A stretch of 64,000 nt of DNA. It comes from Macrostomum lignano. Its lineage: Eukaryota. The notes under the pieces are model-generated. The model searched no databases. It was not told the DNA's origin and was given only the letters and a program-made list of their open reading frames with translations. How positions within the stretch are numbered: position 1 is the stretch's first letter; each line of letters begins with the position of its first letter. Both the position numbers and the translations under genes were made by a program. Positions 8,417-53,188 of this stretch are shown here, piece after piece. Where the stretch lies: positions 124,001 to 188,000 of the forward strand of contig NIVC01001981.1 in the NCBI GenBank assembly GCA_002269645.1, read 5' to 3'.

Positions 8417-8916
8417 CCATAGTCAGGAAGGTGGCTTCTGAGGGGGGAAATTCCCGGGCATACAAAGGGTCTTGGCGCACAAGCGCAGCACACACAAGGG
8501 GTCCTTGGCACACTTGGCGCACAATCATGGCACACACTGAGGTCCCTAGCGCATGTGGCGCATAAGGTCCCTGACATGCATGAAAATTGTAATGCAAATT
8601 AACAATTTTACATAAAATAAAGGAGATTTGTATAGTCTAGAAAGTCAGTGATAAACTTTTTGCTTCTTTAAAATTAACAGTAAATAAAATTAGTATAAAT
8701 TATCGCTAAAAACGTCAATTCTACATTATTCTATTTGTAGGTATATTTAAGTTTGTTAAAAATGAAAATATGCGTAACATTTAAAAAAGGCCTTTCTTAG
8801 AAAACTCTACTCGTGAAGAATGGCGCACAGACAGCGCACAAATGGCGCATAGATGGCGCACAAATCATCCCAAAAAAATTATTCCGGCGCATACTGTGCC
8901 ACCTTCCTGACTATGG
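8417..8916. mobile_element. MITE (500 bp), perfect 19-bp TIR CCATAGTCAGGAAGGTGGC, 8-bp TSD CCCATGCC
   Basis: TIRs at 8417 and 8898-8916; CCCATGCC at 8409-8416 and 8917-8924; subterminal GGCGCA(C) repeats. Confidence 0.92.
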
Positions 8917-9223
8917 CCCATGCCATGCCATGGTAGTTGGTTATTGCCCCCCCATTGGGTTTAGAATTGCCTACCTAATCTTCAATAGACCTCCATGCCT
9001 GCAATAGACCTACCTATTGAAGTTAAGGTAGGTAAAATCAATCCCCATGATGTTTCTCCCCACCGTAATACCTCTCCCATTCCTGGCATTCCTTTGGTTT
9101 ATTTTGCTTCACAATCCCCATGTAATTTTTTCATATAAATGATCATAGCTTGCTTGAAATAAACAAAAATCGTTAAACTGAGCTTATTTGTTACATTAGA
9201 AAAAACTGAATGGAATAGCCAAC

Positions 9224-12695: not shown

Positions 12696-17961
<5,266 letters not shown>

Positions 17962-25900: not shown

Positions 25901-28900
25901 CCCCCGTTTCTCGGGTGAGCGCCCCTGTCTCTCGGGTGAGCGCCCCCGTCTCTCGGGTGAGCGCCCTGTCTCTCGGGTGAGCGCCCCTGTCTCTCGGGTG
26001 AGCGCCCCCGTCTCTCGGGTGGGCGCCCCTGTCCCTGTCTTCTATGCCGGTGGATGCATAGAAGAGATAGCAAAAGTTGAGCACCTGTCATTCGTCCACC
26101 CCCTCTGCGTACGCGGCTCACCTGAGCATACGAACTCTTCTCGTCCTGCAGAGTGACAGAGGCCAGCCGCTGCTGCACCAGAGCCAAATTATAGATCACG
26201 GTGTGGTCGGCAGGATGGGCGTGCCTGGCCCTGAGCAGCACAGTTCGGCACTGGCGCAGCTGGCCGGACTTGAAGTACGCCCTGGCTAGGTACTGCAACA
26301 GTTCCAGATTGTTGTGCCGGTGAAACTTTTTCATACAATTCTCGTACATTTGCACGGCCGCCACAAATGATTTCTGTTCGACGTGAATGTGCGCGATGTT
26401 GATCCACACGTCTGCAAAGTCCGCGGTGGCTTCCCGAACCTGCGGACAGGAGTTCAATAGAACTTATACAGATTTTTAACTAGCTTTAATTTTTAGTCCT
26501 AGTTAAATAAAGCTCACTCTGCGTCAATTTAGTTCACTCCAAACTCAATCTAGCTCACGCTAATTGAATCTAGTTCACTCTAATTGAATCTAGTTCACTC
26601 TAACTGAATCTAGTTCACTCTAACTGAATCTAGTTCACTCTAATTGAATCTAGTTCACTCCAATCGAATCTAGTTCACTCTAACTGAATCTAGTTCACTC
26701 TAACTGAATCTAGTTCACTCCAACTGAATCTAGTTCACTCTAACTGAATCTAGTTCACACTAATTGAATCTAGTTCACTCTAACTGAATCTAGTTCACTC
26801 TAATTGAATATAGTTCACTCCAATCGAATCTAGTTCACTCTAACTGAATATAGTTCACTCTAACTGAATCTAGTTCACTCTAATTGAATCTAGTTCACTC
26901 TAACTGAATCTAGTTCACTCTAACTGAATCTAGTTCACTCTAACTGAATCTAGTTCACTCTAACTGAATCTAGTTCACACTAATTGAATCTAGTTCACTC
27001 TAATTGAATCTAGTTCATTCTAAACTCAATCTAGTTCACTTCGAATTCAATCCACTTCTCTTTAAGTCACCTCACGATGGTGCTAACGCACTTTTACATG
27101 CTTGCAGTTTACTCACATTTAGCTTAGCAAACTTTCTCTCAACCCAATGCATAATTTAGAGAATAATTTATCGAATATATTACAGAAGTCAGCCTTAGGC
27201 CCTAGTTACCTACTAACAGCTCACCTGAGCAAACACGTCCCTAGCCTCGTTGATATAGCCCTTATGCGCCAGCACGCAACCGATGCCGTGGGCGGCCCAG
27301 ATATTTCTCGGATCCTGTCTGAGCACAGATTTGTACATGCTCAGCGCCCGCTCCTGGTGCCGGCGCTCTTTGTCTTTGTCGCGAGCCATCTGATGATGCA
27401 GCGTCTGCAGCCAGATGTTTCCAAGGGCAACGTGAGCGTAGGCGTCGTTAGTGTGCGCCGGCTGTTGAATAATGCGCTCGAATTTTTTCTGAGCCGGGCC
27501 GTACTCGTGCTTGCTCATGTGCAGCATGCCGATTAAGGTCCAGGCGTCCGGGTGCTCCTGGTCCACCTGGCGATTGGGTGCCGATATGTATCGAAATTTA
27601 ATGTTGTAATTAGTGAAGTGGGAAATCGTTTATACACTGTCTGATCTAAGAATATACATGCTCTGATCGATATGCATCGAAAAAAATAATAAGTACATCT
27701 AAAACAAGATTTTCCAGAGCCCGCCATTATCGAGAGATTATGCCGATATGTATTGAAATAGTTCATATGTTTGCGAGATTTCTATATTTAGCTGATATGT
27801 ACCCCTAAGCCTAAAATTTACCTTAGATGCTGCATGACCTGTTTTGCCGATATGTATCGAAATCCTAATAACTTTACATCCAACCCCAAATTGGCAGCAA
27901 ATCTTACATTAAGCGCATCCTTGAACCAATCCGATGCGCTGTAGATCTGGCCTCGATCTCTGGCCATGCAGCCAAGCCTCAGGTAGCAATCGGCATAATT
28001 GGTGTGCTCCCTAAGCACGGATTTGTACAGTAGCTCGGCTTTGTCGTGCTCAAACACAGTCTCGTATAGGCGGGCCAAATTGTACCGAACCGTGACAGTG
28101 ATGGAGCCGTAGTAGCGCTCGTCTGTCTGTCGCTCCCGTTCGCAGTAGGCCAAAGCCTGCGGGCATCATGGGTTGCACTCACGATTGAGCTGGTCTGGAC
28201 ATCTGGGCAGCATCAGAAATTAACTTAACACCTGGCAATCTGGGACTGGGAGGGTAGCAACCCAAAACACCTGAGGAGCTGACAGGGTGGCAACCAAGCA
28301 ACACAAAACACCCGAGGTGGCAACCAAGCAGCCCAAAACACCTGAGGAGCTGACAGGGTGGCAACCAAGCAACCCAAAACACCTGAGGAGCTGACAGGGT
28401 GGCAACCAAGCAACCCAAAACACCTGAGCAGCTGACAGGGTGGCAACCAAGCAACCCAAAACACCCGAGGTGGCAACCAAGCAACCCCAAACACCTGAGC
28501 AGCTGACAGGGTGGCAACCAAGCAATCCAAAACACCTGAGGATCTGACAGGCCTAGAACATAGACTGTAATAGTACGATTCCAACCTGTTGGTAGCACTG
28601 TATAGCCTCCTGATGACTGCCATTCTGGAAGAGCAGAGAAGCCATATTATTGAGTATCTCAGGCGGCAGATCCACCTGCACCTGCTCCTGCAGCAGTTTC
28701 ACGGCAGTCTTGTAGGCAGCGAGAGCCTCCTGCGGTTGAGGCTGCTCAAGAATCTGGCCATACTCAATCCAGGCTTCCACATCGTCAGGAAACTGATCCG
28801 TAACCTGCTTGAGGTAGTTCCTAGCCAATGTTCGCTTAGCCTGATCCTTGCTCTGACTGTAGATGCTGCCAAGAATTTTCAGCGTCTCATAGTTGCTAGG

Positions 28901-31900
28901 CGACGCTTTGAGCACTTTTTCAAATGCAAGAGCGGCATTGTCCTGATCCCGACGGTACAGGTACATTTGGCCAAGGCCGAAGAATGGCAGAATGAAGGTT
29001 GGGGACGCGAACTGGGTGCTCTGATAGTAGTATTGAAAGGCCTGGTCAAAGTCGCCCTGTACGTGGTAGGCTCTGGAGTAGTTGGTGGGTTGTTTTGTAT
29101 TGAAATACACTTTTTATTGTCATCGATTTTTTTTAAATGAGGATCATTATTTAACAACCTAATGATCCCAAAATGAGAATTTCATTTAGGCATAAGTTTA
29201 TTTCGAGATGGGGATCAAACCAATAAGCGTCGAAGTTATCCCAAAATGAGGATCATTAACTGACCATCGATTTTATCCCCCAAAATGAGGATCATTAACT
29301 GACCATCGATTTTATCCCCCAAAATGAGGATCATTAACTGAGCATCGATTTTATCCCCCAAAATGAGGATCATTAACTGAGCATCGATTTTATCCCCCAA
29401 AATGAGGATCATTAACTGACCATCGATTTTATCCCCCAAAATGAGGATCATTAACTGAGCATCGATTTTATCCCCAAAATGAGGATCATTAACTGAGCAT
29501 CGATTTTATCCCCCAAAATGAGGATCATTAACTGAGCATCGATTTTATCCCCAAAATGAGGATCATTAACTGAGCATCGATTTTATCCCCAAAATGAGGA
29601 CCATTAACTGAGCATCGATTTTATCCCCCAAAATGAGGATCATTAACTGACCATCGATTTTATCCCCCAAAATGAGGATCATTAACTGAGCATCGATTTT
29701 ATCCCCCAAAATGAGGATCATTAACTGAGCATTGATTTTATCCCAAAATGAGGATCATTAACTGACCATCGATTTTATCCCAAAATGAGGATCATTAACT
29801 GAGCATCGATTTTTATCCCAAAATGAGGATCATTAACTGAGCATCGATTTTTATCCCAAAATGAGGATCATTAACTGAGCATTGAATTTGCCCCAACCTG
29901 GCCAGCTGGAAGCAGCTCTCAGCTCGCATAGCCTCATTATCGGTGTTGTGAAAGGCGTGCAAAGCGAGGCTCTGCACCTTGGCGTACTCCTTCTTGTAGA
30001 AGAAATGATTAGCCAGGTGGTTCAGCACCATGCTGTTGGTGGGGTCGATCCGATAGGCTCTGGACAGGTGCTCCACGCCTTTGCGAATCGATTCGGGCGA
30101 CTTCTCATTCAACTCGGTGATGGCCACGCCGACAAGGGCGCCCACGCAGTCCGGATCGAGCGACAGGGCGCGCTGGAAGGCGGCTTTGGCGCGGTCGGTT
30201 TTGCCCAGGCGGGCGTAGCAGTGGCCGAGGCCCAGGCGGACATCGGCTGGACAGGTGGGGCACACCTGGGCGGAAGGGGATTGGGGAGTTTATATGTAGC
30301 TAATGTATAAATATTTCAGCCTGTGAGTTTATCAGTCTATCAAATCTGTGATCAACCTATCAATCCATCAACTTGCGAATCCATCAATTTATCAACCTGT
30401 GAGTCTATCAATCTATTAACATGTGAGTCAATCAATCTATCAACCTGTGTCTATCAGTGTATCAACCTGTGAGTCTATCAATCAATTAACATGTGAGTCT
30501 ATCAATCTATCAACCTGTGTCTATCAGTGTATCAACCTGTGAGTCTATCAATCAATTAACATGTGAGGCTATCAATCTATCAATTTGCAAGTCCATCAAT
30601 CTATCAATTTGCAAGTCCATCAATCTATCAACTTGTGAGTCTATTAGTCTATTAATCTATAGATTCAGTCTATCAATTCTCAAAATTTTAGTTTTCGAAA
30701 ACTCGAGAACTGAGCTCAGTCCATCCAGCCTCACCTGCAGCGCCTTGGTGTACAGACCCAAGGCCTCCTTATACCGACGCTGATTAAAGGCGATGCAAGC
30801 TTCGCCAAGAATAGCCGGGACATTGTCAGACACCTGGTTGAGCACGTATTTAAACTGCTGCTCAGCTTGGCTAACATTCTCACCCTCGTACAGAAAAAAG
30901 AATGCCCGACCGAACAGATGCCGAACGTCCATCATGTTGATGCGATCGGCGCTTGTGTAGAGCACAGTGGCCTGTTGTTATGGGGTGGGAAATATTTAAC
31001 ACGAGATAAAAGGTATATTTAGTAGATAACACTATCAACATAATAGCTACTTATGTTTAGAAGTTCACACGTCTGATTCCATCACTGCCTAACACATTTA
31101 CCCTGTTCAGCAGATCACATATTTGTTTAATACATTAACAAATCTAAATAGTCAAGTCTAACAGGTTTTGTATAACTATATTTAACAGTTCAAGCAGTTG
31201 CCTAAAAGATCACAACCCATATCTAACAGAACAAACGTCCCCGTATCTAACAGGTTAAATCCTCATATATAACAGGACACACACCATATCTAACAGGACA
31301 CACTCCCATCTCTAACAGGACACACTCCCATCTCTAACAGGACACACCATATCTAACAGGACACACACCATATCTAACAGGACACACTCCCATCTCTAAC
31401 AGGACACACCATATCTAACAGGACACACTCCCATCTCTAACAGGACACACTCCCATCTCTAACAGGACACACCATATCTAACAGGACACACTCCCATCTC
31501 TAACAGGACACACTCCCATCTCTAACAGGACACACTCCCATCTCTAACAGGACACACCATATCTAACAGGACACACTCCCATCTCTAACAGGACACACAC
31601 CATATCTAACAGGAGACACACCATATCTAACAGGACACACATCCATATCTAACAGGACACACATCCATATCTAACAGATCCATATCTAACAGGTCACGAA
31701 ACCAATATCTAACAGGTCACGAAACCAATATCTAACAGGTCACGAAACCAATATCTAACAGGTCACGAACCAATATCTAACAGGTCACGAAACCAATATC
31801 CAACAGGTTACGAAACCAACATCTAACAGGTCACGAACCAATATCTAACAGGTCACGAAACCAATATCCAACAGGTTACGAAACCAACATCTAACAGGTC

Positions 31901-32491
31901 ACGAACCAATATCTAACAGGTCACGAAACCAATATCCAACAGGTTACGAAACCAACATCTAACAGGTCACGAACCAATATCTAACAGGTCACGAAACCAA
32001 TATCTAATAGGTAACACGCCAATCGTCAAGCAGATTACACACTTTTCTAACAAGTTATTATCTAGCTTGATACTTGCATAATGGTTAAAAGTTTGTCTAA
32101 CAGTTCTCATACTAAACAGAGACGACACCGCAACTGTTCCAGATCTTGATCTCACCTTAGTAAACAGCTCCCGTTTTAAATCGCGGTTTTTTTCCCTGTG
32201 CGCACGTTGAACATAGTAAGCGGCCAGTGAATCGTAACAGCGCATTTGATCTTCTTCAACATCAGCATAGTCTGTGCTAGCCTCAGTGCGAGCTGCATCA
32301 AGGATGGTCTCAAACTGGGCATACTCGGCTTTCTTATAATACTCCAGTGCTAGGTTAACCCACACATTGAGTGCCGCAGTTTCCTGGCGTAGGATGGTGA
32401 GCACTTCCTCAGCTGAAGGCAGCTGATCTACATCAAGTTCAATCACTTCATCTGTGTCCTTCAGTGGAATCTCGATTGTTTTTGAGGCCAT
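22963..32491 (-). CDS. CTR9: RNA polymerase-associated protein CTR9 (PAF1 complex, TPR repeats), 9 coding exons: 32491-32156, 30971-30735, 30265-29898, 29072-28586, 28156-27908, 27566-27225, 26439-26122, 25057-24252, 23464-22963; about 1214 aa
   Basis: [73 protein letters not shown] and [16 protein letters not shown] are CTR9 hallmarks. All eight introns are GT-AG and the phases join (3645 nt total). The C-terminal tail is acidic/basic. Confidence 0.97.
23620..23780. repeat. CT-rich low-complexity tract, CTR9 intron 8
   Basis: Direct. Confidence 0.8.
23835..24035 (+). mobile_element. Degenerate tRNA-derived (SINE-like) sequence, CTR9 intron 8
   Basis: A-box-like TGGTTCAGACGGTTA (about 23843) and B-box GGTTCGATTCCC (about 24015), too far apart and not foldable as a tRNA. 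Confidence 0.35.
25275..26035. repeat. 21-22-bp GC-rich minisatellite (CCCTGTCTCTCGGGTGAGCGC), CTR9 intron 7
   Basis: Direct periodicity, about 34 units. Confidence 0.95.
26540..27040. repeat. 20-bp minisatellite (TAACTGAATCTAGTTCACTC), CTR9 intron 6
   Basis: Direct periodicity, about 24 units. Confidence 0.96.
28250..28550. repeat. About 41-bp minisatellite (GGGTGGCAACCAAGCAACCCAAAACACCTGAGGAGCTGACA) with shorter variants, CTR9 intron 4
   Basis: Direct periodicity. Confidence 0.93.
29236..29883. repeat. 38-39-bp minisatellite (CCCCAAAATGAGGATCATTAACTGAGCATCGATTTTATC), CTR9 intron 3
   Basis: Direct periodicity, about 17 units, ending about 14 nt from the splice donor. Confidence 0.96.
30325..30670. 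repeat. Degenerate ATCAATCTATCAACCTGTGAGTCT-type array, CTR9 intron 2
   Basis: Recurrent motif with a 60-bp higher-order duplication. Confidence 0.8.
31270..32005. repeat. Two abutting arrays sharing the core TATCTAACAGG (20-22-bp GACACACTCC type, then 22-23-bp TCACGAAACCAA type), CTR9 intron 1
   Basis: Direct periodicity; the unit switches at about 31680. Confidence 0.94.
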
Positions 32492-38904: not shown

Positions 38905-41136
38905 TTAAGTGATAATTTTTGGCAGCCAAGCTTCAAATTCGATGTCTCGGAAAGTTATGCTGCGGTTGGTTCTCCACGAAGACACGTCAAAGTATTTCAC
39001 GTATTCATAGCTGCAGTAGGGGTAACTCAATCGCAAGTAGTTCTCAGTGCTGTTCTCCGTACTGTCTGCATCAGTTATGCAATAGCCTTCATTAGGAAAT
39101 GTGATTTTTATGTCCTCAACGTCCTTTGAGCAGCAGTCTTTCTTTCTGATAAAAGTGATGGAGCCAAAGTGCTCCGGCTTTCCAAGAAAATACCGCACCG
39201 AAACCCCGGCTGGAATGGTGGCGAACGTTTCTGGGTTTGAGTCGGTGGTCTGTCGGCAGATGTCGCTTCCAGGTCCTTTTTCTGGACAGGTCAGCTTGGC
39301 CTTGCCTGACATTTATTGGAAGAGCAGCTCAATGTAATGAACAGATGTTAAAACTGGAGTACAGCCCTCCTGCGAATATGTATTTTAATTATGTACAGGG
39401 GCGTCGCCATGAATTTTATGGTGGGGGGGGGACAAAGCCAAGAATTTTACATGTACATAACTAAATTCCTACATGTACATTATTTGGAGAATCGGTGTTG
39501 TCAGCGCTCATTTTGGCACCGCAGGAACTCATTTTGGCGCCGCAGGCACTCATTTTGGCGCCGCAGACACTCATCTTGGCGCCGCAGGCACTCATTTTGG
39601 CGCCGCAGGCACTCATCTTGGCGCCGCAGGCACTCATCTTGGCGCCGCAGGGGCTATACGAGTATTTTGGCGCTCTGAAACAAAATTATTGATTTCCATA
39701 ACGGGTCACAAGGTGGGGGGACAAAAAGCATTCGGCATGTCCCCCATAGGTTTTACTGCATGGGGGGGATATGTCCCCCCTGTCCCCCCCTTCTAGGTGC
39801 ATGGCGACGCCCCTGTTTATGTATTTTTAACAGAATGGCAGATTCAACAATAAATATTGTGCGCAAACATTTCTACTTTTTTCAAAGAATTGAGGAGATA
39901 AAATAAAGCGATCGACTGCCGAAAGTTTTTCACTCGGAACATTAGTTGATCAGTTCAATCAGAGTTGACTCACGAGCGCAGAACAGACCGTTCACGGCGC
40001 GAGAACCGGTCTCACACAGGTCGCACTGTGTCATGCCGGTCTGAAGAGCGAGAGCAAAGTTCAAGTCGCACTTTTTGCAATCTTTCGCTCCCACGGAGTC
40101 CGAATAAGTTCCTGGCGGGCACTCGCTGCATTTCTCCTTTCCGACACCCTTGGTCGAATTGATGAAATCGCCGGGAGGGCAATTTGGTGGCTGAGCTCTG
40201 TAGAGATCGCTGGTAGAGCTGGAGGCGACGAAGTTATCAATTAACAAGACATTTCTTTATTTTAACACTGATTGACAAGATGCTATATCTTGACCCTATT
40301 ATGCTATAGGCTGCCGCATCAATAAATGCAATTTTTATACTACACACTCACAGCTTCAAAGCTTCAAATTCGATGTCTCGGAAAGTTATGCTGCGGTTGG
40401 TTCTCCACGAAGACACGTCAAAATATTTCATTTCTTCATAGCCGCAGTAGGGGTAACTCAATCGCAAGTAGTTCTCAGTGCTGTTCTCCGTACTCTCTGC
40501 ATCAGTTATGCAATAGCCTTCATTAGGAAATGTGATTTTTATGTCCTCAACGTCCTTTGAGCAGCAGTCTTTCTTTCTGATAAAAGTGATGGAGCCAAAG
40601 TGCTCCGGCTTTCCAAGAAAATACCGCACCGAAACCCCGGCTGGAATGGTGGCGAACGTTTCTGGGTTTGAGTCGGTGGTCTGTCGGCAGATGTCGCTTC
40701 CAGGTCCTTTTTCTGGACAGGTCAGCTTGGCCTTGCCTGACATTTATTGGAAGAGCAGCTCAATGTAATGAACAGATGTTAAAACTGGACCAGATGTTGC
40801 TTTGATTGGTCAATTATAAAGGAGTCAACCCAAACAAAACTGACTTACGAGAGCAGAAGATGCCGTCTACGGGTCGAGAGCCGGCATCACACAGGTCGCA
40901 TTCTGTCATGCCGTCTCAACCGCGAGAGCAAAATTCAAGTCGCACTTTTTGCACTCTCTCGCTCCCACAGAGTCCGAATAAGTTCCTGGCGGGCATTCGC
41001 TGCATTTCTCCTTGCCAACCTTTTTGCTGGAGTTGATGAAGCTGCCAGGTTCGCAATTTGGTGGCTCAGCTCTGCTGGGAAGTCTGCCGCAGCTGGCGGC
41101 AGCAAAGATTGCGAATAGACAAAGTAAAGCTTGCAT
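38905..41136 (-). CDS. Secreted Cys-rich protein with two tandem modules [TNFR/GCC2-3-like Cys-rich + about 130-aa unassigned domain]; exons 41136-40849, 40736-40352, 40218 (or 40197)-39974, 39305-38905; about 439 aa; 1-nt frameshift near 40915
   Basis: Signal peptide MQALLCLFAIFAAASCG; KEKCSECPPGTYSDSVGA..CKKC in exons 1 and 3; canonical GT-AG sites with compatible phases (1,2,1). Exon 1 GAGAC-GGCATG versus exon 3 CAGACCGGCATG shows a single-base loss (pseudogene or assembly error). Confidence 0.75.
39396..39815. mobile_element. hAT MITE (420 bp), perfect 16-bp TIR CAGGGGCGTCGCCATG, TSD (A/T)TTATGTA, with about 7 internal 21-bp units; lies in intron 3 of the Cys-rich gene
   Basis: TIRs and 7/8 TSD read directly; same family as 51662-53188. 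Confidence 0.92.
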
Positions 41137-42063
41137 TCTCAGCACAAAAGTATGAGCAAATTATGGCACGGCTCGATTGCAAAAGAACTGAAAATGTCTG
41201 AAATAGATCTAAATTTGCTATTTTTCCTCTGCGTGCTATGGGTAAAGTTTTTTACCTCTGCATGCATGCCTCTAATTTCTGCGGGAAAGATATTTCTGAG
41301 TTAACTCAATCAGCAGGAATGCCAGACCATTTTCCTCCCGGTGGCACAACCAAAATAGGGAGAACATAATCTGGATAATTCCCCAAATTCCGAGCCGAAA
41401 AAAAAAACAAGTTACCAGACCTCTAAACCGACCAGATATTCAACGATAATGCCAAGTCGGATTTTCTCATAAGTGCTTCCCACAAGGGCTTTTACGAGCA
41501 GCACCAGGGTCGCGGACCTCCCGATTACGGCAGCTTGAAACTTGACAAACTTGGAACTTTGAGACTGGGAGATGTCAATTTAGGCACGCGAAGGTGTATT
41601 CAGCAGGCCTGTGAAGTATGAGACAGACTAGGCCTATGGGCTACGGTCTGCAATGCCTCACGCCTGCCCCCATCTTCAGCAGGTTAAGGCTGGTGGGAGG
41701 TCTGTACCCTCTATTTGCCGCTGGCAGCCGCAGACCCCCCCCCACGCTGTCTCGCAAGTCGACCCAGGGTACTCGTCCCCGCGTGTGTTCAAGGCAGACC
41801 CTAGGGCTGCTGGACAGACTGGGCTCCGACGCTGGCGACCCATCCAGTGGCTTCGGCCGAACTTGGGTATGCGGGTCTGGCTCGCCAGCCTACAGGCCGT
41901 GGTACTGCTTAACGTACCCCCTAATGCCTAAGGTGTTTGACCGTGCCAATGGGCTGGAAGACCGGGGGGGGGGGTAGTCCGGTCGCTAGCGGTCCTTTTT
42001 CTTTTTCTTTTTCTTTTTCCTCCTTTCTTTTGTGACTCAGCTCACTCCTTCCCGCTTTCAGCT

Positions 42064-43522
42064 ATGGCATCCTCCGCCTCTAATCCTCCCGCTGAAGCCG
42101 GGACCAGGGCAACTTCGGCCGGTAAATCTGGCGCCAGCGTCGCCCCACCGGGGGTAGATGGGCTCGCCGCCGGCTCGTCCGGTGACATGCCCGCATGCGC
42201 ACCCGGGCCCTCCGCGGAGGCCCGACGTGCCCGCAACCAACGCCGCAACGAGCGGCGACGGCGACTACTGGATACTGTGGGCCGGCCACCGGCGGAGGGG
42301 GGAACCTAGGGAGGGCGAGGCTGCTGTTGGGCCGAAAGAAACCAGAGCAACCCCTGACCCTCAGGATACAACCCCCGCTGGTGAGCCACCCAGTAAACCT
42401 GCTACCAGCGCGGCCGGGCCTTCGGGGACCGCCGCCACCAACTACGCCTCAAAGGTCAAGCTCCAACCGGTGGTCATCGTCTTCGGGGAAGAGCACGACC
42501 TCACGGCCGATGAGCTCGACAGTGCCTGGCGCACCATTGATGCTGCGCTCATTGACCAGCTCCTGGCAGGCCGCCCTGTGAGCGTGGTCAAATCTGCCAA
42601 AACCGACGGCTGCATCTTCATCTGGTGCAACTCGAAGGAGAGTCTACGCGAGCTTCTGCCAAAGTTGAACTGGCCCAAGAAGCTCGGCAAGCTCGTCTTT
42701 GCCAGTGAGGGCGAGCGACAAAAGACCCAGCGCTTTCGCGTCTGGATCCCGGCCGGCAGTGCCATTAAGTCCGGAGATCAGCTTAGGCAGATCCTGCTAA
42801 AGCTGCACCCTGACCTCGAGGTCAACGGGCTCCTGCACCACGCCACTTCCCGCAAGGAGAAGGGGGCCACGGTGATCCTAGGGCTCTCTGACGCCTGGGC
42901 TAAGCGCTTGCCGCCTAAGTCCACAATCCACCTTGGTCTGACTCAGCTGACCATCCTCCGCTGCGAGGAGGGGAAAGCTGACGAAGCCAAGCATGCTGAG
43001 GCTTCCGAAACCGGAACTGGGGCCCAGGCTCCTCCGGCAAGAGAAGCTGAGGCAAACGGCTGACTTCAGCCCGGTAAAGCATCCGCGCTGCTGAAACCGG
43101 CAATCGCGACCAGCAGACCTGCTAGGAGCACCCGGAGGTCCGGTCTGATCCAGCGCGCGCTGGACCAGGCCAAGAGCCTCCGGGCGTATCGTGAGCAGGC
43201 CCGCTCTTCTCGCGCTCCACCCCAACAGCCAGAAGGCCCGGCCGTTGGTGGGGAGGCGCCGACCGACTGGTTCGAGTCTTCGACTCACCAGGAGGCTGGT
43301 GCCACCCGCATCGACCTGACCGACGAGGCGGAGGGGACGGGCAGTAACAGCACCGAAGCACGCAGGGGAGGCGACGGTAACGTCCACGCTGGGCTCATGC
43401 CCGCGGAGGACTCCGCAGCCACCCTAACTGCCGAGGACGCTGAAAACTCCCATGGAGGTCTGTGGGCTAACCACCCTGAAAAGGAGGAGGATAACCTGCT
43501 CAACGATTCCCCAACTGCATGA
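42064..43522 (+). pseudogene. LINE ORF1 (about 486 aa reconstructed; DUF4780-like core, no CCHC knuckle seen); frameshift in the G6 run at about 42300 and premature TGA at 43061
   Basis: ATG at 42064; the frame of ORF 42158-43063 stays open from 43064 to TGA 43520-22. Core QRFRVWIP...LRQILLKLHPDL...GATVILG...IHLGLTQLTI resembles LOA ORF1 from memory only. Confidence 0.7.
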
Positions 43523-46500
43523 TAATGATTAGCAGCCAGGGAATTAATTGCTTGCAGATTAATCTGCAACACTGCGTCGAAGCCTCGGTCAACCTTATGC
43601 GTTACGCCGAGCTCGACACGCCGGGGCTCATCCTCGTCCAGGAACCCTGGACTCTTAGAGGTCAGCCTCAGAACGCCCCTGCCGGCTATAACTGTTTTTA
43701 TACTTACCCTCGCGAGGCCAACCAGCCTCCCAGAGCTTGCATCTTTGCGAGCAAAACGCTCAGTGCGTGGCTCAGATCGGACCTGTCTAACAGGGACATC
43801 TGCGTCATCCAATCCGAGGACCTCCTTCCTGGGAAGACCACCCTCATAGCCTCGGTCTACCTACCAGGCGATGCTGCGGTCATCCCCAGAGCCCTCGCTA
43901 CGCTGGTCGAGCTCTGCTCTGCCAAAAACTACGAGCTCATGGTTGCCGGCGACATCAACGCCCACCATACTCACTGGGGCAGCACCGGTATTAATCAGAG
44001 GGGCGAAGACCTCCTAGCCTACGTTGCCTCTGCAACTCTGGGTCCACCCCTACTTTTGACAACGGACGCCACGCTCGCAACACCCAGACTCTACCAGAGT
44101 ACTGGGGCGTGGTGGGTGCTTCCAGCGTCCTCACTCTCTGATCACAATTTCATTTCCTTCAACCTGATGGCCGCGCGTAGCGCAACTCGTGTTACGTCGA
44201 GACGGAACGCCAGAAACACTGATTGGGAAACCTTCGGGCTCACTCTAAAGGAATTCCATCGATCTCCTGGCCAACCATTCACGATCACGTCATGCCAAGA
44301 AGCGGATGAGTGCGCGACTGTGTTGACAGAAACGCTAACCGCCGCCTTTGAGGCATCCTGCCCTTTAAAAGCCTATAAGGGGAAAAAATCCGCGCCGTGG
44401 TGAAATCCCGAGCTCGGCAACCTCCGTCGCAGAGCTAAGAGACTCCACCGCAGAGCTACTAAAACTAAGAGCCCAGCGGACCAAACCGCCTATCATGAAG
44501 CAATCCATGAGTTTAAAAGGCAGGTTAGGAATGTGAAAGCACTTACGCTGGACAAAATGTCTAACCTTTCCTCGGTGAAACGCACCGACGGTACGTCCAC
44601 GGACAACCCAGGGGAAACGCTTGATGTAATGCTCACTGCGTTTTTCCCCAACGAGCCAGCTAACCCGACCACTCCGGATCACTCGGAGGAAGGTCACGCC
44701 CTAGCTGCCTCTATCATCACGGAGGACCGCATCGTGAGAGCGGCTAACTCCTTCAAACCTTTCAAAGCCCCAGGACCCGACGGCATCGTACCTGCCCTTC
44801 TAAGAGAGGCGGTTAAATGCACAGGCTTCCTGCGTAAACTTTGCAGTCTTCTTTGGGCGTGCATCACGCTTGGTTATGTCCCGCAGGCATGGACGGAGGC
44901 AAAGGTGATTTTTATCCCTAAGCCAGGCCACCCGGACTACCATTCTATCAAATCCTTCAGACCGATCAGTCTGACCTCCTCCCTGGTCAATCTGATGGAG
45001 AGACTGGTGCTGTGGCGCCTTCTTTCCGTAGAGCTGAAGAACAAGCCTCTCAGCGAGAACCAGCACGCCTTTCGGGCGGGTCGCTCCACTGAAAGCGCGC
45101 GGCACGTCCTGGTCGATAAACTTGAGAATGCCGTGCTTGGTAGCGGCTTCGCTCTGGGAATCTTCCTGGACATCATTGGCGCCTTTGATAACGTCCTCTT
45201 CGAGGCGTTCCGAAGAGCTCTTTGTGAGAGGCAAACGCACTCACATCCCACCAGATGGATCATGTACATGATCAGCCATCGCACGGCCACCGCCAGTCTG
45301 CTGGGCTACAAGAGGACGGTTCCCGTCTGCAAAGGTATCCCGCAAGGTGGGGTGCTGTTTACAGTTCTCTGGAACATGTTCATCGATGAGCTCCTTCGGG
45401 ATGCTCGGCCTGACCCCATTCTGAAAGTTGGATATGCGGACGATGTCACCGCAGTGGCATCTGGTCCGTCCCCTGACGTTCAAGCTCGGTGCTTGGTGGT
45501 GCTTGACGTTCAAGCTAAAGCCAAGAGGGCCCTCGCAGTCCTCGCACAACTGCGCAGGGCTGTCGGCACCACCTGGGGGCTTACCCCCAAGCGCCTCTGG
45601 TGGATCTACACTGCAATGGTTAGGCCTGCTATCTCGTATGGCGGCCTGATCTGGGCTAGCGCTCTGCAGATGAAGACCTGCCTGAAGGCTCTCAGGAGAG
45701 CGCAAGGGCGCGCATGCCGCATGATCATGAGCGCCCCCCGTCCTTACGATGGCCTCAACGCCTTCCTCAACATTCCCCCACTAGATATCTTTGTCCGCAG
45801 GGAAGCGGCTAAGACTGCCCGCCGTCTAGCTTACGCTGGCATTCGTATCCTGCCCCATAGGGTCGTGGCTAAGCGCAAGCTCCTGCCTCAGGCCGACCTC
45901 TGCCTTAAAGACTTGAGAGACAGCGGCGGGCTCCACGTCTTACCTGACGGTGAACCCCGCACTCTCAACCTCCTTCAGCGCTACAAGCTCACCATCCCCT
46001 CTAGGGATGCTGCCAATGACCTCTGGAATTCCCAGGAGGTCCATTGCTACACGGACGGTTCCATCAAAGACGGCCACGCCGGCTTTGGGTCTGCATCATC
46101 ATCAGCGACCGCGTCATTGCCACGCATACCCAGCACACTGGCGGACTCTCCACAGTCTTCCAGAACAAAGTCCTTGCCATCAGCTCCTGCGCTGCAGAGC
46201 TGAACGCCAAGGGTACGAGAGGAAAGACTATTGTCATCCAATCCGATAGCCAAGCGGCCTTACAGGCCCTTTGCCACACCACAACGAACTCCCGGACAGT
46301 CGCCGACTGCGTCCGGCAGCTCAACCTCCTGGCCAGTAGCAATACTGCCAGGCTGAAGTGGATCCCAGGGCACGCAGGGTTTCCGGGGAACGAGCTGGCA
46401 GACACCCTCGCCAAGAGGGGCGGCTCTGGCTCTTTCTTCGGCCCCCCTGGTCCCTATGCCCTTGAGAGTCATCAATCGTCAGATCGACGACTGGGCTGAC

Positions 46501-46923
46501 TCCCTCCACAGGAACAGATGGGCGGGCACCCAAAACTGCCGGCAATCTCGTGCCGCGGTTCCCTGCCCGTCTCGCAGGCTCAGTAACATCCTTCTGAACC
46601 AGAATCGGAAGGATATCCGAGCCCTTGTCATGACCCTTACTGGCCATGGCTACCTCGCCAGGCACTGCTTTCTCCGAGGTGACCTCGAGAGCGAACTTTG
46701 CCCCTTTTGCGAGTACGACAATGAAGATGCTCAGCACTTTGTTTGTCACTGCCCCTTCTTTAACAAAGACCAGCTACGCTACCTCGGGCCGAACCCGTCC
46801 ATTGACGAGGTCTGCCAGCCCGACAGCATCCCACGGCTCATCCAGTTCCTTCGGGCGACTAGACGAGCCAGTTTCTTTCCAACGGAAGATCACGCTGCAG
46901 GACGGACCGGCGGACCACCCTGA
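43519..46923 (+). pseudogene. LINE ORF2: AP endonuclease - reverse transcriptase - RNase H - Cys/His motif, disabled
   Basis: LQINLQH/LVQEPW/GDINAHH/SDH (APE); KAPGPDG, FRPISLTS, QHAFR, FLDIIGAFD, GIPQGG, GYADD (RT); YTDGS, SDSQAAL, WIPGHAGFPGNELADTLAK (RNase H); CPFC...HFVCHC. Stop at 44401 (PW*N for PWWN), frameshifts near 46090 and 46450, deletion after YADD. Confidence 0.95.
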
Positions 46924-48869
46924 CCGGCCCCACGCCTCTGCCTGTCTGCGGGCCTTCAGGGGCTGGCGGAATGGGCGACCCTCGCCTCCCCGCTGTGTCT
47001 ACGGACCACCCTGCAGCTGAGTCAAAGTAAGTCAAGGTGTCAATTTAGAATAGAAGGAATTCCAAATCCAGCCATCAAAGATTTTCCGTGTAATATCCTT
47101 TTTCGTCATGCTTGGCAAAGATGAGTAGCCAATTTATTGAGGCGAAGGTTGCAGTGGACCGACCGAAAGCGAGGAGCATGAAGTTTCAAGTTCATATCAG
47201 ATCAAGTTCATATCAGAGTAAGTCTATGTGTGATCTCTTGAAACTAGGCTCCGATATAGTTCTGCATCAGCACTTATATCTGTCGCGACGAGTTGACACT
47301 ATTCCAGGCCAAAAGCGAGCCAGTACACATACATTTATTTTCTGGGAGTTCAGTATTGTTCTATAAGTAGTGCACTCAGCGGTTTATACAAGCTCGACAG
47401 TAAATGAACCTATTGCAAAAGAGTCCTCTCTCTATCCTTGCATATATGATAAATGCGATTGAAGTCAATACTGTCATTGCTAAGATTTCTGCTCATACTC
47501 GCTGATTTTGCACTCTGATCCTCAGCTTCTATTCCATGCCCTGCAACAGGCGCACTCTCTACTTACTTCATACCACGACTCGATCATGACAAGTAAGAAA
47601 ATAGGCAGAATGGCTAATGCCCTGAACTGCTGGCCCTGACCTTGGCCCATGAAGTTTGGTTTATTATTTAAGTGAAAATAGAAATTAGAAAATGGTGAGC
47701 AAAAAGGGGGTGGAGACCTGCAGCTGGCTGACAATACCAAGGACAGTGCAAAAGATGAAAATACCTTAACAGACACGGTCGACAGGCAGGGTTGCATGGT
47801 GCGGTGGTTGTCGAATGGTCACGGCGGAGGCTGCAGTCACGGACGATCCATGCCAGAAGCCTCGGATTGGGGTCGCAATAAAAGATGGGGAGGTTTGGTC
47901 TCGCGGGAAAACAGAACAACACAAGGGACGGAAAGAGTAAAACGAGTACAGGTCCCGAACCAGGGGAGCTCGAGGAGAAAAAGTAGAAGAGCAACGATGA
48001 ACCGATGGTGCTCAAAAAGAGCTTCTATTTTAGCCCTGAGACCACGTGACACGCGATCACGTGAGAAATCTGTACGATATTGAAGGCCGTGACCTGTCCT
48101 TGACCCCGTTGCCAAGCAACCCTGATGACGTCGCCAGACAGCTGCGATGTGATTGGATAAGAAATTGGGGTGGAGCGAAGCGGAGAAAATGATTTTATGA
48201 TGGGGATTACGTAACAGGCGGGAAAAAGCTTGGGGAAATAGGGAGGGGGTCATAAATATTTCACAGCATGAATGATGTCGAGCAATAGAAAGGAGGTGGG
48301 TTTGCTGATTGGGGGAGTGGGTAGGTGATAAGCATGACTCAACCTAATGAGCCATCACGGGGGGAGCACAGGTATCACAGGGGAGTAAGGGATGTGGGGA
48401 AAAATTGGTGGGGAGGCCCAGGACGTGTCTACATCACATTCATATACGTACTGTGCCTGTGTGTGTAAGGAAATAAAATTAACATTGAATCTTTACTTTC
48501 CTAAACGAAAAGCTCTAGGAAAGGCAAGACAATCAACAGATGAACAATAGATCTCAATTCTATCAAAAGCTATGGCAACTTTTGTTCTGAAAAATGAATT
48601 GAAAAGCTCATATCTCCGTAATGTATTTTTCGGTAAAACCTGCCTCCAAAACTTTTTCGAGAAACGTAGTTTTCTGGCCTTCTACTTGAGTAGTCTTTCG
48701 TTCGAACGGGTTGGAGGCAGAGGATTAGCTTCGTTCGGATTAGCTAATTTCTAAATTTTAATTTTAAAATTCTCCCTGTTAGTTTCTCACCGGCTTCTCT
48801 TAGCTATGGACCCAGCTGCTGACCATCTGACCGGAGTGAAAGTCCAGAGCTCTAGGCGATCAGTTTTTG

Positions 48870-49008
48870 CACTCCTAGATCCTAGATCTCAGATCCTAGA
48901 TCCCAGATCCTAGATCCCAGATCCTAGATCCCAGATCCTAGATCCCAGATCCTAGATCCCAGATCCTAGATCCCAGATCCTAGATCCCAGATCCTAGATC
49001 CCAGATCT
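48870..49008. repeat. 14-bp tandem repeat (CCTAGATCCCAGAT, about 9 units)
   Basis: Direct periodicity. Confidence 0.94.
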
Positions 49009-49706
49009 TATGGATCCTGAGATACTAACGCAGCACAGTTAAACCAAGCATGCAGTGTAAAGTAAAGTCCAAAGATATAATATTTCATATAACTGTCTTG
49101 CCTATTCATTGGGTGTGACTATGACTGGGTGTGCCTATTCATTGGGCGAAGTTTTTTTAACTGCTCAAGCATAATTCTACACTGTATTTCGGACCATTAA
49201 TGTATGATAGTTTTATAACTGCAAGCGCATATGTACAGTTCCACCAATGACCGCCTAAAAGTTTTATGATGACTGGGACCCACATCAAATTATAATTGAC
49301 TCCAATGAGGCTGAGAGGCGAAGTACTGCTTCATGCAGCATTAATCCTCAAACTCATCCCTTACTGTGTCCACCCACATTTTTGATGCATAAAAACTAAC
49401 TGATACATGTAGGAATGTATCCCACTGCGTGACGGATGTACATGTAGGAATTTGCCACGCAGAGACAAATCAATTAATTTAGTCACTAGAACCAATAGAA
49501 AACAACAGTGGGAAGGAAAATTTTCTGTTTGATCCTCCGTTCCCATGACAACGTGGGAAATAGATTTTTGCACATCCCAAAACAGTTGAAACTGCTACAA
49601 ATACAATACGTGCATGCGATCGAAAGAGACAGCAAAAATTTCACACCGCCTGTTGGTCAGCAACTCAGTCGCACAGCCAACTTCTAATTCTGGCCTAGTG
49701 CTAGTG

Positions 49707-51010
49707 ATGAAGACAATTCTCCATTTCTTATCGGCACTGCTGACTTCTGCTCTGGTGAGCAGCGCGGCCAGATTCGAGCTGCAGCTAGGAGCCACGAGCA
49801 ACGGAACTCATCCCTTTGCGTTTGAAGTCGCGCAAAGCTTCAGCCAGCGCCACTGTGCCGAGCTGTGCTCACAAATAGCCGAGTGCTTCGGTTTCTACTC
49901 GGCGCAGAACAAAGCGGGACCCTGCGGACTCTTCAACGCGTCCGCCTTCTACTGGAAGAGCTCGTGGATATCCGCTGGGTGGGAGCAGCAGCTGCAGGAA
50001 GTCTTCTTGCTTGTGATTGGTGAGTCTCATAGTTTGGGAAGCGTTGATAAGTCTTCCTCCAGAGAACTGTTGCGATCACCTGCGTAAGAACAGCTCGGAT
50101 GGCTCCAAAACTGTTGAGGTTATACAATATCGGAGCCTAACCTGATGAATTGCGCTAGATATCAGTCCAGTTCCCGTGCGTCCATGATTGCTTATAGTAT
50201 ACCCATTAAATTTTAAGACAGTTAATTTCCACGGCTTTGAAGACAATTGTTCTTTTGTGAAGACTTATTTTGTATAAAATCGGTCGATGTTCTAAGTTCT
50301 CTGTCTAAAGCGTCCTGCGCCAAATTAAGGATATCGCTGAACTAACTTGGGGTTCCAAGCTGATTTAAGCTGCTACCAAGCTGAAAACAGAGCAAATGGA
50401 CAAATAAAATTAAGCTAAGGTCAAAGCATAGGCGAACCACAGGCGGGAAAAACCATCCACAACAGAAGCTACAACTACATGTAGAATTGCACGCACAGTA
50501 TAAGAGGCGCAGCGAAGACTTGCAAGTGCTTACAGAAATGTACGCTCGTATTTGCACCTTACAACAGCTGTGAAAAGTAACCAACAGCAAATATCCATTT
50601 TAGACTTCAATATTCAGAAGCTTACAATGTCCAGTTGCAATCAGACTTCGACAGCAGGAACAGCGGAATGCGGTCGAGCTCTCGATGGAAACAAAGACCA
50701 AGTGTACGATGGAGGATCCTGCACTCACACTCTGCAAGAGCCTAACCAATGGTGGCAGGCTGAATTCCATCGACCGTCGATTGTCACGCACGTTGTCATC
50801 TACAACAGACAGGAGTGCTGCAGAGAGCGACTTAACAGCTTCGCTCTGCTGGTGAACAACGCTGTGTGCGCTACGGTTAACCTCACAACTTCATTCTTGG
50901 TAGGCAACTTCTCCTGCTGGGGCGCCGGCACCAGCATCCGCTTGGAGAGTCACCTGTTTGACGCAGTCACACTGTGCGAGTTCGAGGCCTTCGGCGTCCA
51001 CTTTCCCTGA
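49707..51010 (+). CDS. Secreted PAN/apple + F-type (fucolectin) lectin; exons 49707-50019 and 50604-51010; 239 aa
   Basis: Signal peptide MKTILHFLSALLTSALVSSA; HCAELCSQIAECFGF...CGLF (PAN); RALDGN, SCTHT, WWQAEF, IYNRQECCRERL, VTLCEFEAF (F-type lectin). Phase-1 intron G|GTGAGT ... TTTTAG|AC joins in frame. Confidence 0.88.
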
Positions 51011-51661
51011 TCAAATGGCCACGATGACGCCATCAACATAAAAGGATCAAGATTTGCGGAATTCAACTTCTGACGAAAACAAGCCTCTAATTTCTATTTA
51101 CAAAGATTATATGATTAATCTCTGACTTGAATGTAATTGTCAATTCACCCGATTAGTGGCCGTCAGCTGATATTAACCGAAGTGACAGGAACAAAATTTA
51201 CTTGTTACAATTCGCAACCACCTAAAATATGCTTTAAACATTAATGACGCAATCTTTGCATATTTTTGTTGTCTAAAGATTATGCTTTAGCTTTGCTTTT
51301 TGTTCCTGTTTTTCATTATTTTTATTTTTAATCCTGCATCCTCTTTGCAAGTATATGCATAGAGCGTGTCAGCCATTGCCGTACTCTTAGCTGATATTGT
51401 ATTTTTGAGTTCGAGTTGGATAGTAAAATAATACTTTTTTTATTCGTTACGAGTTCTGCCGAAAATCGAAATTTATTCGCATTTTGAAGTTCCTAATCCT
51501 TTATCAGAATAAGTACTAATTTTATCAGGATATTTTCTTTTGAGCTTTTAGGTAACCTACGTCTCTATCTCAGATCTACGAATCTACGAATAGAATTAAA
51601 TTTAATTTTACTCATTCTCAAAACAAAAATAAGTAATGAATTACCTGAAGACTCTCAGGAG

Positions 51662-53188
51662 CAAGGGCGTCGCCTTGTATGTTATGGTGTGGGGACAAAG
51701 TCAAGAATTCTACATGTACATGTACATTATTTTCAGAATCGGTGTTTTTGGCTCATTTGGCGCCACAGGCACTCATTTTAGCGCCGCAGGCACTCATTTT
51801 AGCGCCGCAGGCACTCATTTTAGCGCCGCAGGCACTCATTTTAGTGCTGCAGGCACTCGTTTTAGCGTCGCAGGCACTCATTTTAGCGACACAGGCCCTC
51901 ATTTTAGCGCCGCAGGCACTCATTTTAGCGCCGCAGGCACTCATTTTAGCGCCGCAGGCACTCATTTTAGCGACACAGGCACTCATTTTAGCGCCGCAGG
52001 CACTCATTTTAGCGCCGAAGGCACTCATTTTAGCGTCGCAGGCACTCATTTTAGCGCCGCAGGCACTCATTTTAGCGCCGCAGGCACTCATTTTAGCACC
52101 GCAGGCACTCATTTTAGCGTCGCAGGCACTCATTTTAGCGACACAGGCACTCATTTTAGCGCCGCAGGCACTCATTTTAGCGCCGCAGGCACTCATTTTA
52201 GCGCCGCAGGCACTCATTTTAGCGCCGCAGGCACTCATTATAGCGCCGCAGGCACTCATTTTAGCGACACAGGCACTCATTTTAGCGCCGCAGACACTCA
52301 TTTTAGCGTCGCAGGCACTCATTTTAGCGCCGCAGGCACTCATTTTAGCGCCGCAGGCACTCATTTTAGCGCCGAAGGCACTCATTTTAGCGTCGCAGGC
52401 ACTCATTTTAGCGCCGCAGGCACTCATTTTAGCGCCGCAGGCACTCATTTTAGCGCTGCAGGCACTCATTTTAGCGCCGCAGGCACTCATTTTAGCGACA
52501 CAGGCACTCATTTTAGCGCCGCAGACACTCATTTTAGCGTCGCAGGCACTCATTTTAGCGCCGCAGGCACTCATTTTAGCGCCGCAGGCACTCATTTTAG
52601 CGCCGAAGGCACTCATTTTAGCGTCGCAGGCACTCATTTTAGCGCCGAAGGCACTCATTTTAGCGCCGCAGGCACTCATTTTAGCACCGCAGGCACTCAT
52701 TTTAGCGCCGCAGGCACTCATTTTAGCGCCGCAGGCACTCATTTTAGCGACACAGGCACTCATTTTAGCGCCGCAGGCACTCATTTTAGCGCCGAAGGCA
52801 CTCATTTTAGCGTCGCAGGCACTCATTTTAGCGCCGCAGGCACTCATTTTAGCGCCGCAGGCACTCATTTTAGCGCCGAAGGCACTCATTTTAGCGTCGC
52901 AGGCACTCATTTTAGCGCCGCAGGCACTCATTTTAGCGCCGCAGGCACTCATTTTAGCACCGCAGGCACTCATTTTAGCGCCGCAGGCACTCATTTTAGC
53001 GCTACAGACACTCATTTTCTGCGCCGCAGACGCTATATTTTGTCACCCTGAAGTAAAATTTTTGATTTCCATAGCGGAGTCACAAGGTTGGGTGGGTGGG
53101 TCAAAGCATTGGCATGTCTCCCCATAGCTTTTACTGGGGGCGGACATGTCCTCCTTGCCCCCTTGTCCCCCCGGTGGCGACGCCCCTG
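51662..53188. mobile_element. hAT MITE (1527 bp), same family as 39396-39815, TSD CTCAGGA(G/A), inflated by a 21-bp array
   Basis: Ends CAAGGGCGTCGCC / GGCGACGCCCCTG; shared unique flanks (GGACAAAG.CAAGAATT.TACATGTACAT; AAAGCATT.GGCATGTC.CCCATAG); 7/8 TSD. Confidence 0.92.
51751..53030. repeat. 21-bp minisatellite (GCAGGCACTCATTTTAGCGCC, about 61 units) inside the MITE
   Basis: Direct periodicity; explains the 471-, 482- and 420-aa repeat ORFs. Confidence 0.97.

Follow-up and report, generated by a model that had tools for sequence, protein, structure and literature searches.

MITEs (miniature inverted-repeat transposable elements) carrying tandem repeats are already established, with miDNA4, Xstir and DTC84/pearl as described examples. 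For miDNA4 of Xenopus tropicalis it was reported that arrays expand inside the copies and that the long ones become free satellites as the terminal inverted repeats (TIRs) decay (Scalvenzi and Pollet, 2014, as summarized in PMC12628747 and PMC9659126). For Xmix/Xstir, MITE, composite and array forms are described as occurring side by side in the account given in PMC12628747, and pearl/CvA and DTC84 of bivalves are outlined as MITEs with internal tandem repeats in PMC3879986. The central tandem repeats of DINE-1 in Drosophila and the Cg170-type arrays of Crassostrea gigas are borne by Helitrons or Helentrons (PMC7492417). Elements of the hAT superfamily are recognized structurally by 8-bp target site duplications (TSDs) and a YARNG terminal motif, and their documented TIRs, which include CAGGGGTCCCCAAAC, begin with CAGGGG (PMC3014272). 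For Hermes, a target preference for nTnnnnAn was shown as well as short subterminal repeats that are bound by the BED domain (PMC10368747). Here, we describe two copies of a transposon family with an internal array of 21-bp units, found in 64 kb of Macrostomum lignano DNA (contig NIVC01001981.1, positions 124,001 to 188,000, assembly GCA_002269645.1), a stretch that is referred to as the window and to which all positions relate. With a probability of roughly 0.75, the two copies represent independent, fairly old insertions of one MITE-like and most likely hAT-mobilized family, in which the long array would have expanded after the two lineages had split, most probably in place.

Two insertions of one element family

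Both elements are in plus orientation, are separated by 11.8 kb and follow the same general layout, i.e., a 5' arm of 90-111 bp, the 21-bp array and a 3' arm of 159-164 bp (Table 1). They are small, non-coding, TIR-bounded and TSD-flanked, as is typical for MITEs, and as the arms of copy 2 total 249 bp, its size of 1527 bp is due only to the array. A 13-nt TIR, CAGGGGCGTCGCC, is common to both elements. It extends to 16 fully complementary bp in copy 1; in copy 2 the left end CAAGGGCGTCGCC agrees with the right end, which reads CAGGGGCGTCGCC as reverse complement, at 12 of 13 positions, and positions 14-16 have diverged, leaving a TIR of 13 bp. The whole element has a strong single-stranded DNA fold (z = -4.8), because of the TIRs and the G-run and C-run subterminal segments.

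The 5' arms of the two copies align with each other within the window, as do the 3' arms (E values in Table 1), with 73-76% identity counting gaps and roughly 76-84% identity without them. Ungapped columns differ at 15.5% in the 5' arm and at 24% in the 3' arm, corresponding to Kimura two-parameter distances of 0.17 and 0.30, respectively, and several indels, one of them of 16 bp, distinguish the copies; conserved blocks include TACATGTACATTATTT..AGAATCGGTGTT and TTGATTTCCATA. Beyond the TIR tips the homology breaks off, the outer flanks being unrelated. The first-pass annotation had proposed one family in two independent insertions, each with its own 8-bp TSD, and both statements hold: the arms are homologous, the TIR is shared and the 21-bp unit is found at an equal internal position, and the insertions were separate events because the TSDs differ and the flanks are unrelated. 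The TSDs themselves are present at both elements, yet they are near-perfect rather than perfect with 7 of 8 bases identical in each pair. A segmental duplication was ruled out since the homologous stretch is bounded precisely by the TIR tips, with different flanks outside, and a composite transposon spanning 39396-53188 was ruled out since each element has a TSD pair of its own. Given an arm divergence of 16-24%, a qualification that the first-pass annotation lacked, the copies are old or derived from different subfamilies rather than recent siblings.

That the elements are real and not a chance constellation was confirmed by motif counts in the window. Allowing up to three mismatches, the 21-bp unit has 66 matches, all of which (66/66) lie within the two elements, with 0 expected. 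The TIR 13-mer with up to two mismatches is found six times versus 0.59 expected; the four matches with 0-1 mismatch outside exons are the four element ends, and the remaining two fall in GC-rich coding exons of CTR9. One of the exonic sites, 24556-24568, has a single mismatch; as it lies in such an exon and is partnerless, it was treated as chance. In a joint scan, a TIR match of at least 11/13 together with an adjacent 8-bp TSD of at least 7/8 was sought in the 400-bp flanks of 17 arrays, with shuffled flanks as controls. It returned exactly one match for each of the two family arrays, at the very coordinates that had been annotated before, and none at the other 15 arrays and none in the shuffled flanks.

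Table 1. Positions of the two elements and of their parts in the window.
Feature	Position	Strand	Details
Copy 1, whole element	39396-39815	+	420 bp
Copy 1, left TSD ATTATGTA	39388-39395	.	7/8 versus TTTATGTA
Copy 1, left TIR CAGGGGCGTCGCCATG	39396-39411	+	16/16 complementary to 39800-39815
Copy 1, 5' arm, GGGGACA motif at 39428	39396-39506	+	aligns with 51662-51746, E 6e-15
Copy 1, 21-bp array, 7 units, consensus CTCATTTTGGCGCCGCAGGCA	39507-39653	+	TRF and unit listing
Copy 1, 3' arm	39654-39815	+	aligns with 53036-53188, E 6e-23
Copy 1, 3' arm, degenerate partial unit ATTTTGGCGC	39664-39673	+	
Copy 1, 3' arm, TGTCCCC motifs	39738, 39772, 39781		motif count
Copy 1, right TIR	39800-39815	+	
Copy 1, right TSD TTTATGTA	39816-39823	.	
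Copy 2, whole element	51662-53188	+	1527 bp
Copy 2, left TSD CTCAGGAG	51654-51661	.	7/8 versus CTCAGGAA
Copy 2, left TIR CAAGGGCGTCGCC	51662-51674	+	
Copy 2, 5' arm, GGGGACA motif at 51691	51662-51751	+	
Copy 2, 21-bp array, ~61 units, consensus CTCATTTTAGCGCCGCAGGCA	51752-53029	+	TRF, unit string
Copy 2, 3' arm, TGTCCCC motif at 53164	53030-53188	+	
Copy 2, right TIR GGCGACGCCCCTG	53176-53188	+	
Copy 2, right TSD CTCAGGAA	53189-53196	.	

Composition and turnover of the arrays

Tandem Repeats Finder (TRF) reports a period of 21 in both elements, with 6.9 copies and 94% matches at 39507-39651 in copy 1 and with 60.9 copies and 93% matches at 51752-53029 in copy 2. The unit numbers of about 7 and 61 given by the first-pass annotation are thus reproduced at homologous positions, and the arrays differ in size by ~9-fold. 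The unit-by-unit listing of both arrays also agrees with the unit variants that had been described. Copy 1 contains four TTTTGGC and three TCTTGGCG units (four with TTTT, three with TCTT; variants TTTTGGCG/TCTTGGCG), so that T(T/C)TTGGC is present at the diagnostic site in 7/7 units. In copy 2, TTTTAGCG is present in 59 of 60 full units, and the variant units GCCGAAGG (n = 6), GTCGCAGG (n = 8) and GACACAGG (n = 5) recur. The difference comes down to unit position 9, where copy 1 has G in 7/7 units and copy 2 has A in 59/60, i.e., each array was homogenized for its own variant, TTTTGGCG in copy 1 versus TTTTAGCG in copy 2. The first unit of copy 2 is only 20 bp long and keeps the ancestral TTTGGCG with the G at the array edge, and the last two units are degenerate; turnover within the array is indicated because the interiors are homogeneous and the edges divergent, which is its usual signature. 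At the 3' junction the arrays end with ...CGCAGGGGCTATA in copy 1 and with ...CGCAGACGCTATA in copy 2 (pattern ...CGCAG(GG/AC)GCTATA), and in copy 1 the degenerate partial unit ATTTTGGCGC lies in the arm past this junction. As the array boundaries are homologous in both copies, the repeat, with at least one unit, predates the split of the lineages.

For the long array, the units were coded one by one, with A for the consensus unit, B for GTCGCAGG and C for GCCGAAGG, which results in the string AAAGHIAAADACBAAEBDAAAAJDFBAACBAAKADFBAACBCAEAADACBAACBAAEALM. The order of the variants is non-random. Unit C is followed by unit B in five of six cases, which was reached in 0/5000 shuffles. Two blocks are each found twice, AADACBAA with eight units and DFBAACB with seven, the latter with a lag of 11 units; a shared variant-rich block of such length was seen in ~0.1% of shuffles (p about 0.001). 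The earlier claim of multi-unit duplications from one variant is hence borne out. Over 1239 bp the long array contains 12 variants with at least 13 substitutions, and its units have a mean distance of 3.3% from the consensus. This value is far below the divergence of the arms, so that the expansion of the long array is much younger than the split of the two lineages. The TIR mismatch, the diverged positions 14-16 and the TSD mismatch of copy 2 suggest in addition that its insertion is older than the last growth and turnover of its array, and to judge from these few sites the long array probably grew in place, after insertion.

Several other origins of the repeat were considered. A coding repeat was rejected: the 21-bp period leaves frames open, yet homologues were not found and the G-to-A change gives TAG in one frame. 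A structure-prone unit as the cause of instability was ruled out as three-unit DNA folds show no unusual hairpin potential compared to shuffles (z = +0.39, +0.46 and -1.67). An origin from an RNA gene or a short interspersed element was ruled out as no Rfam match is present in the window.

Assignment of the family and competing explanations

The assignment of the family to hAT, as it was made in the first-pass annotation, is likely, with TSDs, tips and subterminal repeats consistent with it. TSDs of 8 bp, as characteristic for hAT, flank both copies (7/8 each; none in shuffled controls), the tips read CAGGG at three ends and CAAGG at one, in agreement with YARNG, and of the two target sites, which are too few to establish a preference, the TSD of copy 2, CTCAGGAG, fits nTnnnnAn at both positions. 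Furthermore, seven of the ten occurrences of GGGGACA/TGTCCCC in the window are located in the arms. Those of the 5' arms are in forward orientation, those of the 3' arms for the most part in reverse, and in this they resemble hAT subterminal repeats.

The following succession of events would explain the two copies. The ancestral element would have held the 21-bp repeat, in one or few units, prior to the split of the lineages, and this short internal repeat would have been dispersed by cut-and-paste transposition, in the proposed reading by a hAT transposase. After the split the arrays would have turned over separately; the short copy would have remained at seven units (TTTTGGCG/TCTTGGCG), and in the long copy the G-to-A variant unit (TTTTAGCG) would have taken over as the array reached ~61 units. 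Single units and blocks of units may have been duplicated by local unequal exchange between sister chromatids or homologues, or by slippage during replication or repair, with a homogenization that left the array edges untouched.

A number of observations weigh against this interpretation. The TSD of copy 1, ATTATGTA, fits nTnnnnAn at T2 only, other superfamilies likewise produce 8-bp TSDs, and neither a hAT transposase nor an autonomous partner is present among the open reading frames (ORFs) of at least 150 aa in the window. The argument from TIR and TSD decay comprises a handful of sites, the TIR differences could be subfamily differences older than the insertion, and two copies are compatible with an expansion in a source element as well as in place. 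The accuracy of the assembly over the 1.28-kb array depends on reads outside this analysis. Finally, with unremarkable hairpin z-scores of the unit, the sequence offers no cause for the instability of the array.

These points lend some weight to alternative explanations. The family could belong to a non-hAT TIR superfamily that makes duplications of ~8 bp, such as P, Mutator-like, Merlin or Zisupton elements, as the hAT call draws on no more than the length of the TSD, a terminal motif of 5 nt and subterminal repeats and as the copy 1 TSD departs from nTnnnnAn at position 7. We regard this as unlikely: the tips CAGGGG/CAAGGG fit YARNG and agree over six bases with the start of documented hAT TIRs such as CAGGGGTCCCCAAAC, both copies have TSDs of 8 bp rather than 9 bp, and a short TIR of 13-16 bp is typical of hAT. 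P elements begin with CATG, and the TIRs of Mutator elements are mostly much longer. Similarly doubtful is the view that the copies represent two old subfamilies with an essentially fixed unit number, in which a single build-up of the long array in a master copy was followed by transposition as a 1.5-kb element, with no expansion at the present locus. Separate subfamilies agree with the arm divergence of 16-24%, fixation of the A-variant spans the whole long array, and an element of 1.5 kb is still readily moved by cut-and-paste transposases. On the other hand, no more than ~13 substitution events have accumulated over 1239 bp of the long array, the long copy shows a decayed TIR and a mismatched TSD, and the block pattern is irregular and nested, as would be expected from continuing exchange and not from a single frozen structure; with one copy per putative subfamily, none of these observations is decisive.

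Two further explanations have a far lower probability. That the 61-unit array is an assembly artefact, i.e., an over-expansion or mis-join of a shorter repeat, could be thought of since exact repeats of up to 168 bp (8-unit pattern) are beyond short-read resolution; the 12 variant units in irregular and partly nested order, the degenerate edges and the intact unique arms on both sides make it very improbable, and the array has the look of genuine sequence derived from spanning reads. Equally remote is a function of the repeat as transposon-borne cluster of transcription factor sites in or near genes. The ancestral unit TTTTGGCGCC, as opposed to the form TTTTAGCGCC, contains TTTGGCGC, a perfect match to the E2F in vitro consensus TTTSSCGC (PMC3069401), and MITE-borne E2F sites are known from Brassica, where they are bound in vivo (PMC5950925). 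Copy 1 has four perfect TTTGGCGC sites within 140 bp (39533-39673), in an intron and ~1.3 kb from the first exon of the gene, and one site is found in the first unit of copy 2 (51756-51763). However, the match was noticed post hoc, and with hundreds of known motifs a single 8-mer carries little weight; the window as a whole shows no enrichment of the motif (13 matches versus 8.5 expected), and the motif is present in only 12% of E2F1 ChIP peaks (PMC3069401). As the G-to-A change spread through the long array, the E2F motif was destroyed in all units except the first, so that the expansion was not driven by keeping it. The E2F match may thus serve as a low-probability lead only, and the array is best viewed as a passenger with no demonstrated function.

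Surroundings and relation to known systems

Searches for further relatives returned no additional member of the family. An ORF of 482 aa that spans the long array and extends into both arms has no match at E <= 0.001 among 5.8 billion proteins. The 20-mer GCGCCGCAGGCACTCATTTT gave one chance match in metagenome contigs, inside a bacterial gene and without an array, and none in viral contigs; a 33-base two-unit pattern had no match in a prokaryote genome collection, the TIR and unit strings were not found in the literature, and exact-product look-ups of the neighbouring exon ORF and of the ORF across copy 1 gave no record. The window itself contains only two copies, of 76-84% identity, in 64 kb.

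Tandem arrays account for 9694 bp or 15.1% of the window, 19 of them measuring 130 bp or more, and the two family arrays make up 15% of this tandem-array sequence. The first-pass annotation had considered that the many arrays of the genome might originate from the family, which is not supported by the window. The other 15 arrays have no exact TIR of 10 bp or longer in the surrounding 400 bp, no flank similarity to the transposon family or to one another, no TIR/TSD pair in the joint scan and no unit related to the 21-bp unit. The 39-bp array at 29240-29889 starts ~12 bp past a CTR9 splice donor and occupies most of the intron, so that no space for a transposon arm is left. In this window, the other arrays therefore do not stem from the family, the evidence of this one 64-kb stretch points away from the genome-wide inference, and the abundance of ~20-bp arrays probably has another cause. 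It is scarcely plausible that dead copies keep expanding the 21-bp repeat in place and lose their ends, and thereby constitute a major source of the very large minisatellite content of this genome, with ancestral units also spreading clusters of E2F-type sites into genes. Arrays in the left half of the window lie at 1-1045, 1403-2153, 13970-14716, 15399-15753, 16956-17564, 25271-26033, 26526-27040, 28256-28552, 29240-29889, 30316-30652 and 31216-32012; in this part (1-32012) their periods are mostly 20-24 or ~40 bp and they fill introns in the genes for CTR9 and a TACC-like protein. Minisatellites named 'mirage', which lie where introns and exons meet in amphioxus (PMC3087553), may offer a parallel to these intron arrays.

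The intron in which copy 1 resides belongs to a gene on the minus strand with a signal-peptide first exon, followed by Ephrin-receptor-like/TNFR cysteine-rich exons; the signal-peptide ORF of this gene for a secreted protein is found at 40906-41145 (-). A 431-bp exon of the gene is present twice with 98.6% identity (38928-39358 and 40359-40789) and a 235-bp segment twice with 83% identity (39966-40200 and 40841-41074). These duplicates are alternating minus-strand exons, one exon type being without Pfam match, and the introns between the duplicated exon pairs, one of which hosts copy 1, are unrelated. This suggests a very recent exon duplication or gene conversion, confined to the 431-bp exon. 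Copy 2 is located ~650 bp downstream of a plus-strand F5/8 type C (fucolectin-like) exon. Between the copies lies a long interspersed nuclear element of the non-LTR type at 42158-46923 (+; GC-rich, 55%) with Exo_endo_phos_2, RVT_1 and RNase_H domains, which is probably frame-shifted as it is split over several overlapping ORFs. Elsewhere, exons of CTR9 (RNA polymerase-associated factor) are found at 22963-32491 (-) and an exon for a TACC C-terminal coiled-coil at 13463-13945 (-). Relatives of the CTR9 exons reach at most 76% identity, and ~65-67% at most where most of the query is covered, with snail and schistosome among the matches.

Further inverted-repeat pairs that resemble MITEs are located at 8411-8435/8898-8922, 8897-8916/9224-9243, 9913-9951/10581-10619 and 33717-33750/34367-34400; they are 20-39 nt long and 82-100% complementary, and a clear TSD was seen at none of them. 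The element at 8411-8922 has TGGCGCACA-type short repeats near both ends, including a tandem of 2-4 copies with a period of 11/22 bp at 8819-8865, and may represent another small element that carries internal repeats. Dispersed direct repeats are present at 55760-56036/61169-61445 (277 bp, 93%) and at 54013-54082/54297-54366 (70 bp, 100%).

Compared to the described systems, the family falls into the known class in which a central array lies between conserved arms and the unit number varies among copies (6.9 versus 60.9). The idea of a mobile seed for minisatellites corresponds to the existing published model for miDNA4 (PMC12628747, PMC9659126). As summarized there, miDNA4 is a Tc1/mariner MITE that, like the present family, has its internal repeat as single monomer or as arrays of variable number. 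It differs by its TA target, compared to the 8-bp, hAT-like TSD reported here, by its host and by its longer monomer, and it was surveyed genome-wide, whereas the present family is known from two copies. The repeats of Xmix/Xstir from Xenopus laevis (Hikosaka and Kawahara, 2004, as cited in PMC12628747) likewise originate from MITE-internal sequence; in the account given there two neighbouring elements were joined via a stem-loop, whereas the array described here is housed by one element, the two arms of which are intact. DTC84/pearl of bivalves, in the description outlined in PMC3879986, shares a modular layout in which flanking 'cassette' arms, bearing short inverted repeats, enclose a central core-repeat array, a unit number that varies between copies and variant units in an ordered pattern. 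In DTC84 the core repeats number up to five, a microsatellite is linked and the putative TSD is 'AA', in contrast to the 8-bp TSD, the 21-bp unit and the up to 61 units found here, with no microsatellite module beside the array. A membership in pearl/DTC84 was rejected on these grounds, i.e., the 8-bp TSD and the missing microsatellite module, and as the two are not related in sequence.

The hAT-HT2N elements of Anolis (TIR CAGGGGTCCCCAAACT) are similar in their 8-bp TSD, their TIR of 13-16 bp starting with CAGGGG (YARNG), their size of a few hundred bp and the absence of coding capacity (PMC3014272). However, the TIR diverges past base 6 and an expandable internal minisatellite is not described there. 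DINE-1 and Cg170 are comparable in that short satellite-like arrays are dispersed by non-autonomous mobile elements; in contrast to these rolling-circle elements, which are without TIRs and TSDs, the present elements have both. As found, the pair adds one more family to a known class, and the richness of the genome in ~20-bp arrays is not explained by it. It constitutes a two-copy illustration of the published model, in which a mobile element carries a short repeat that grows, here ~9-fold, by block duplication. Points of some interest are this large ratio, the shortness of the 21-bp unit, the probable relation to hAT and the internal record of block duplications, which is a clear one. If unit numbers turn out to be continuous genome-wide and if free arrays exist, the family would provide a system to study birth and growth rates of minisatellites with the arm divergence as clock. 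In its workings the family is akin to miDNA4 or DTC84, and by its TSD, TIR, unit and modules it is a member of neither.

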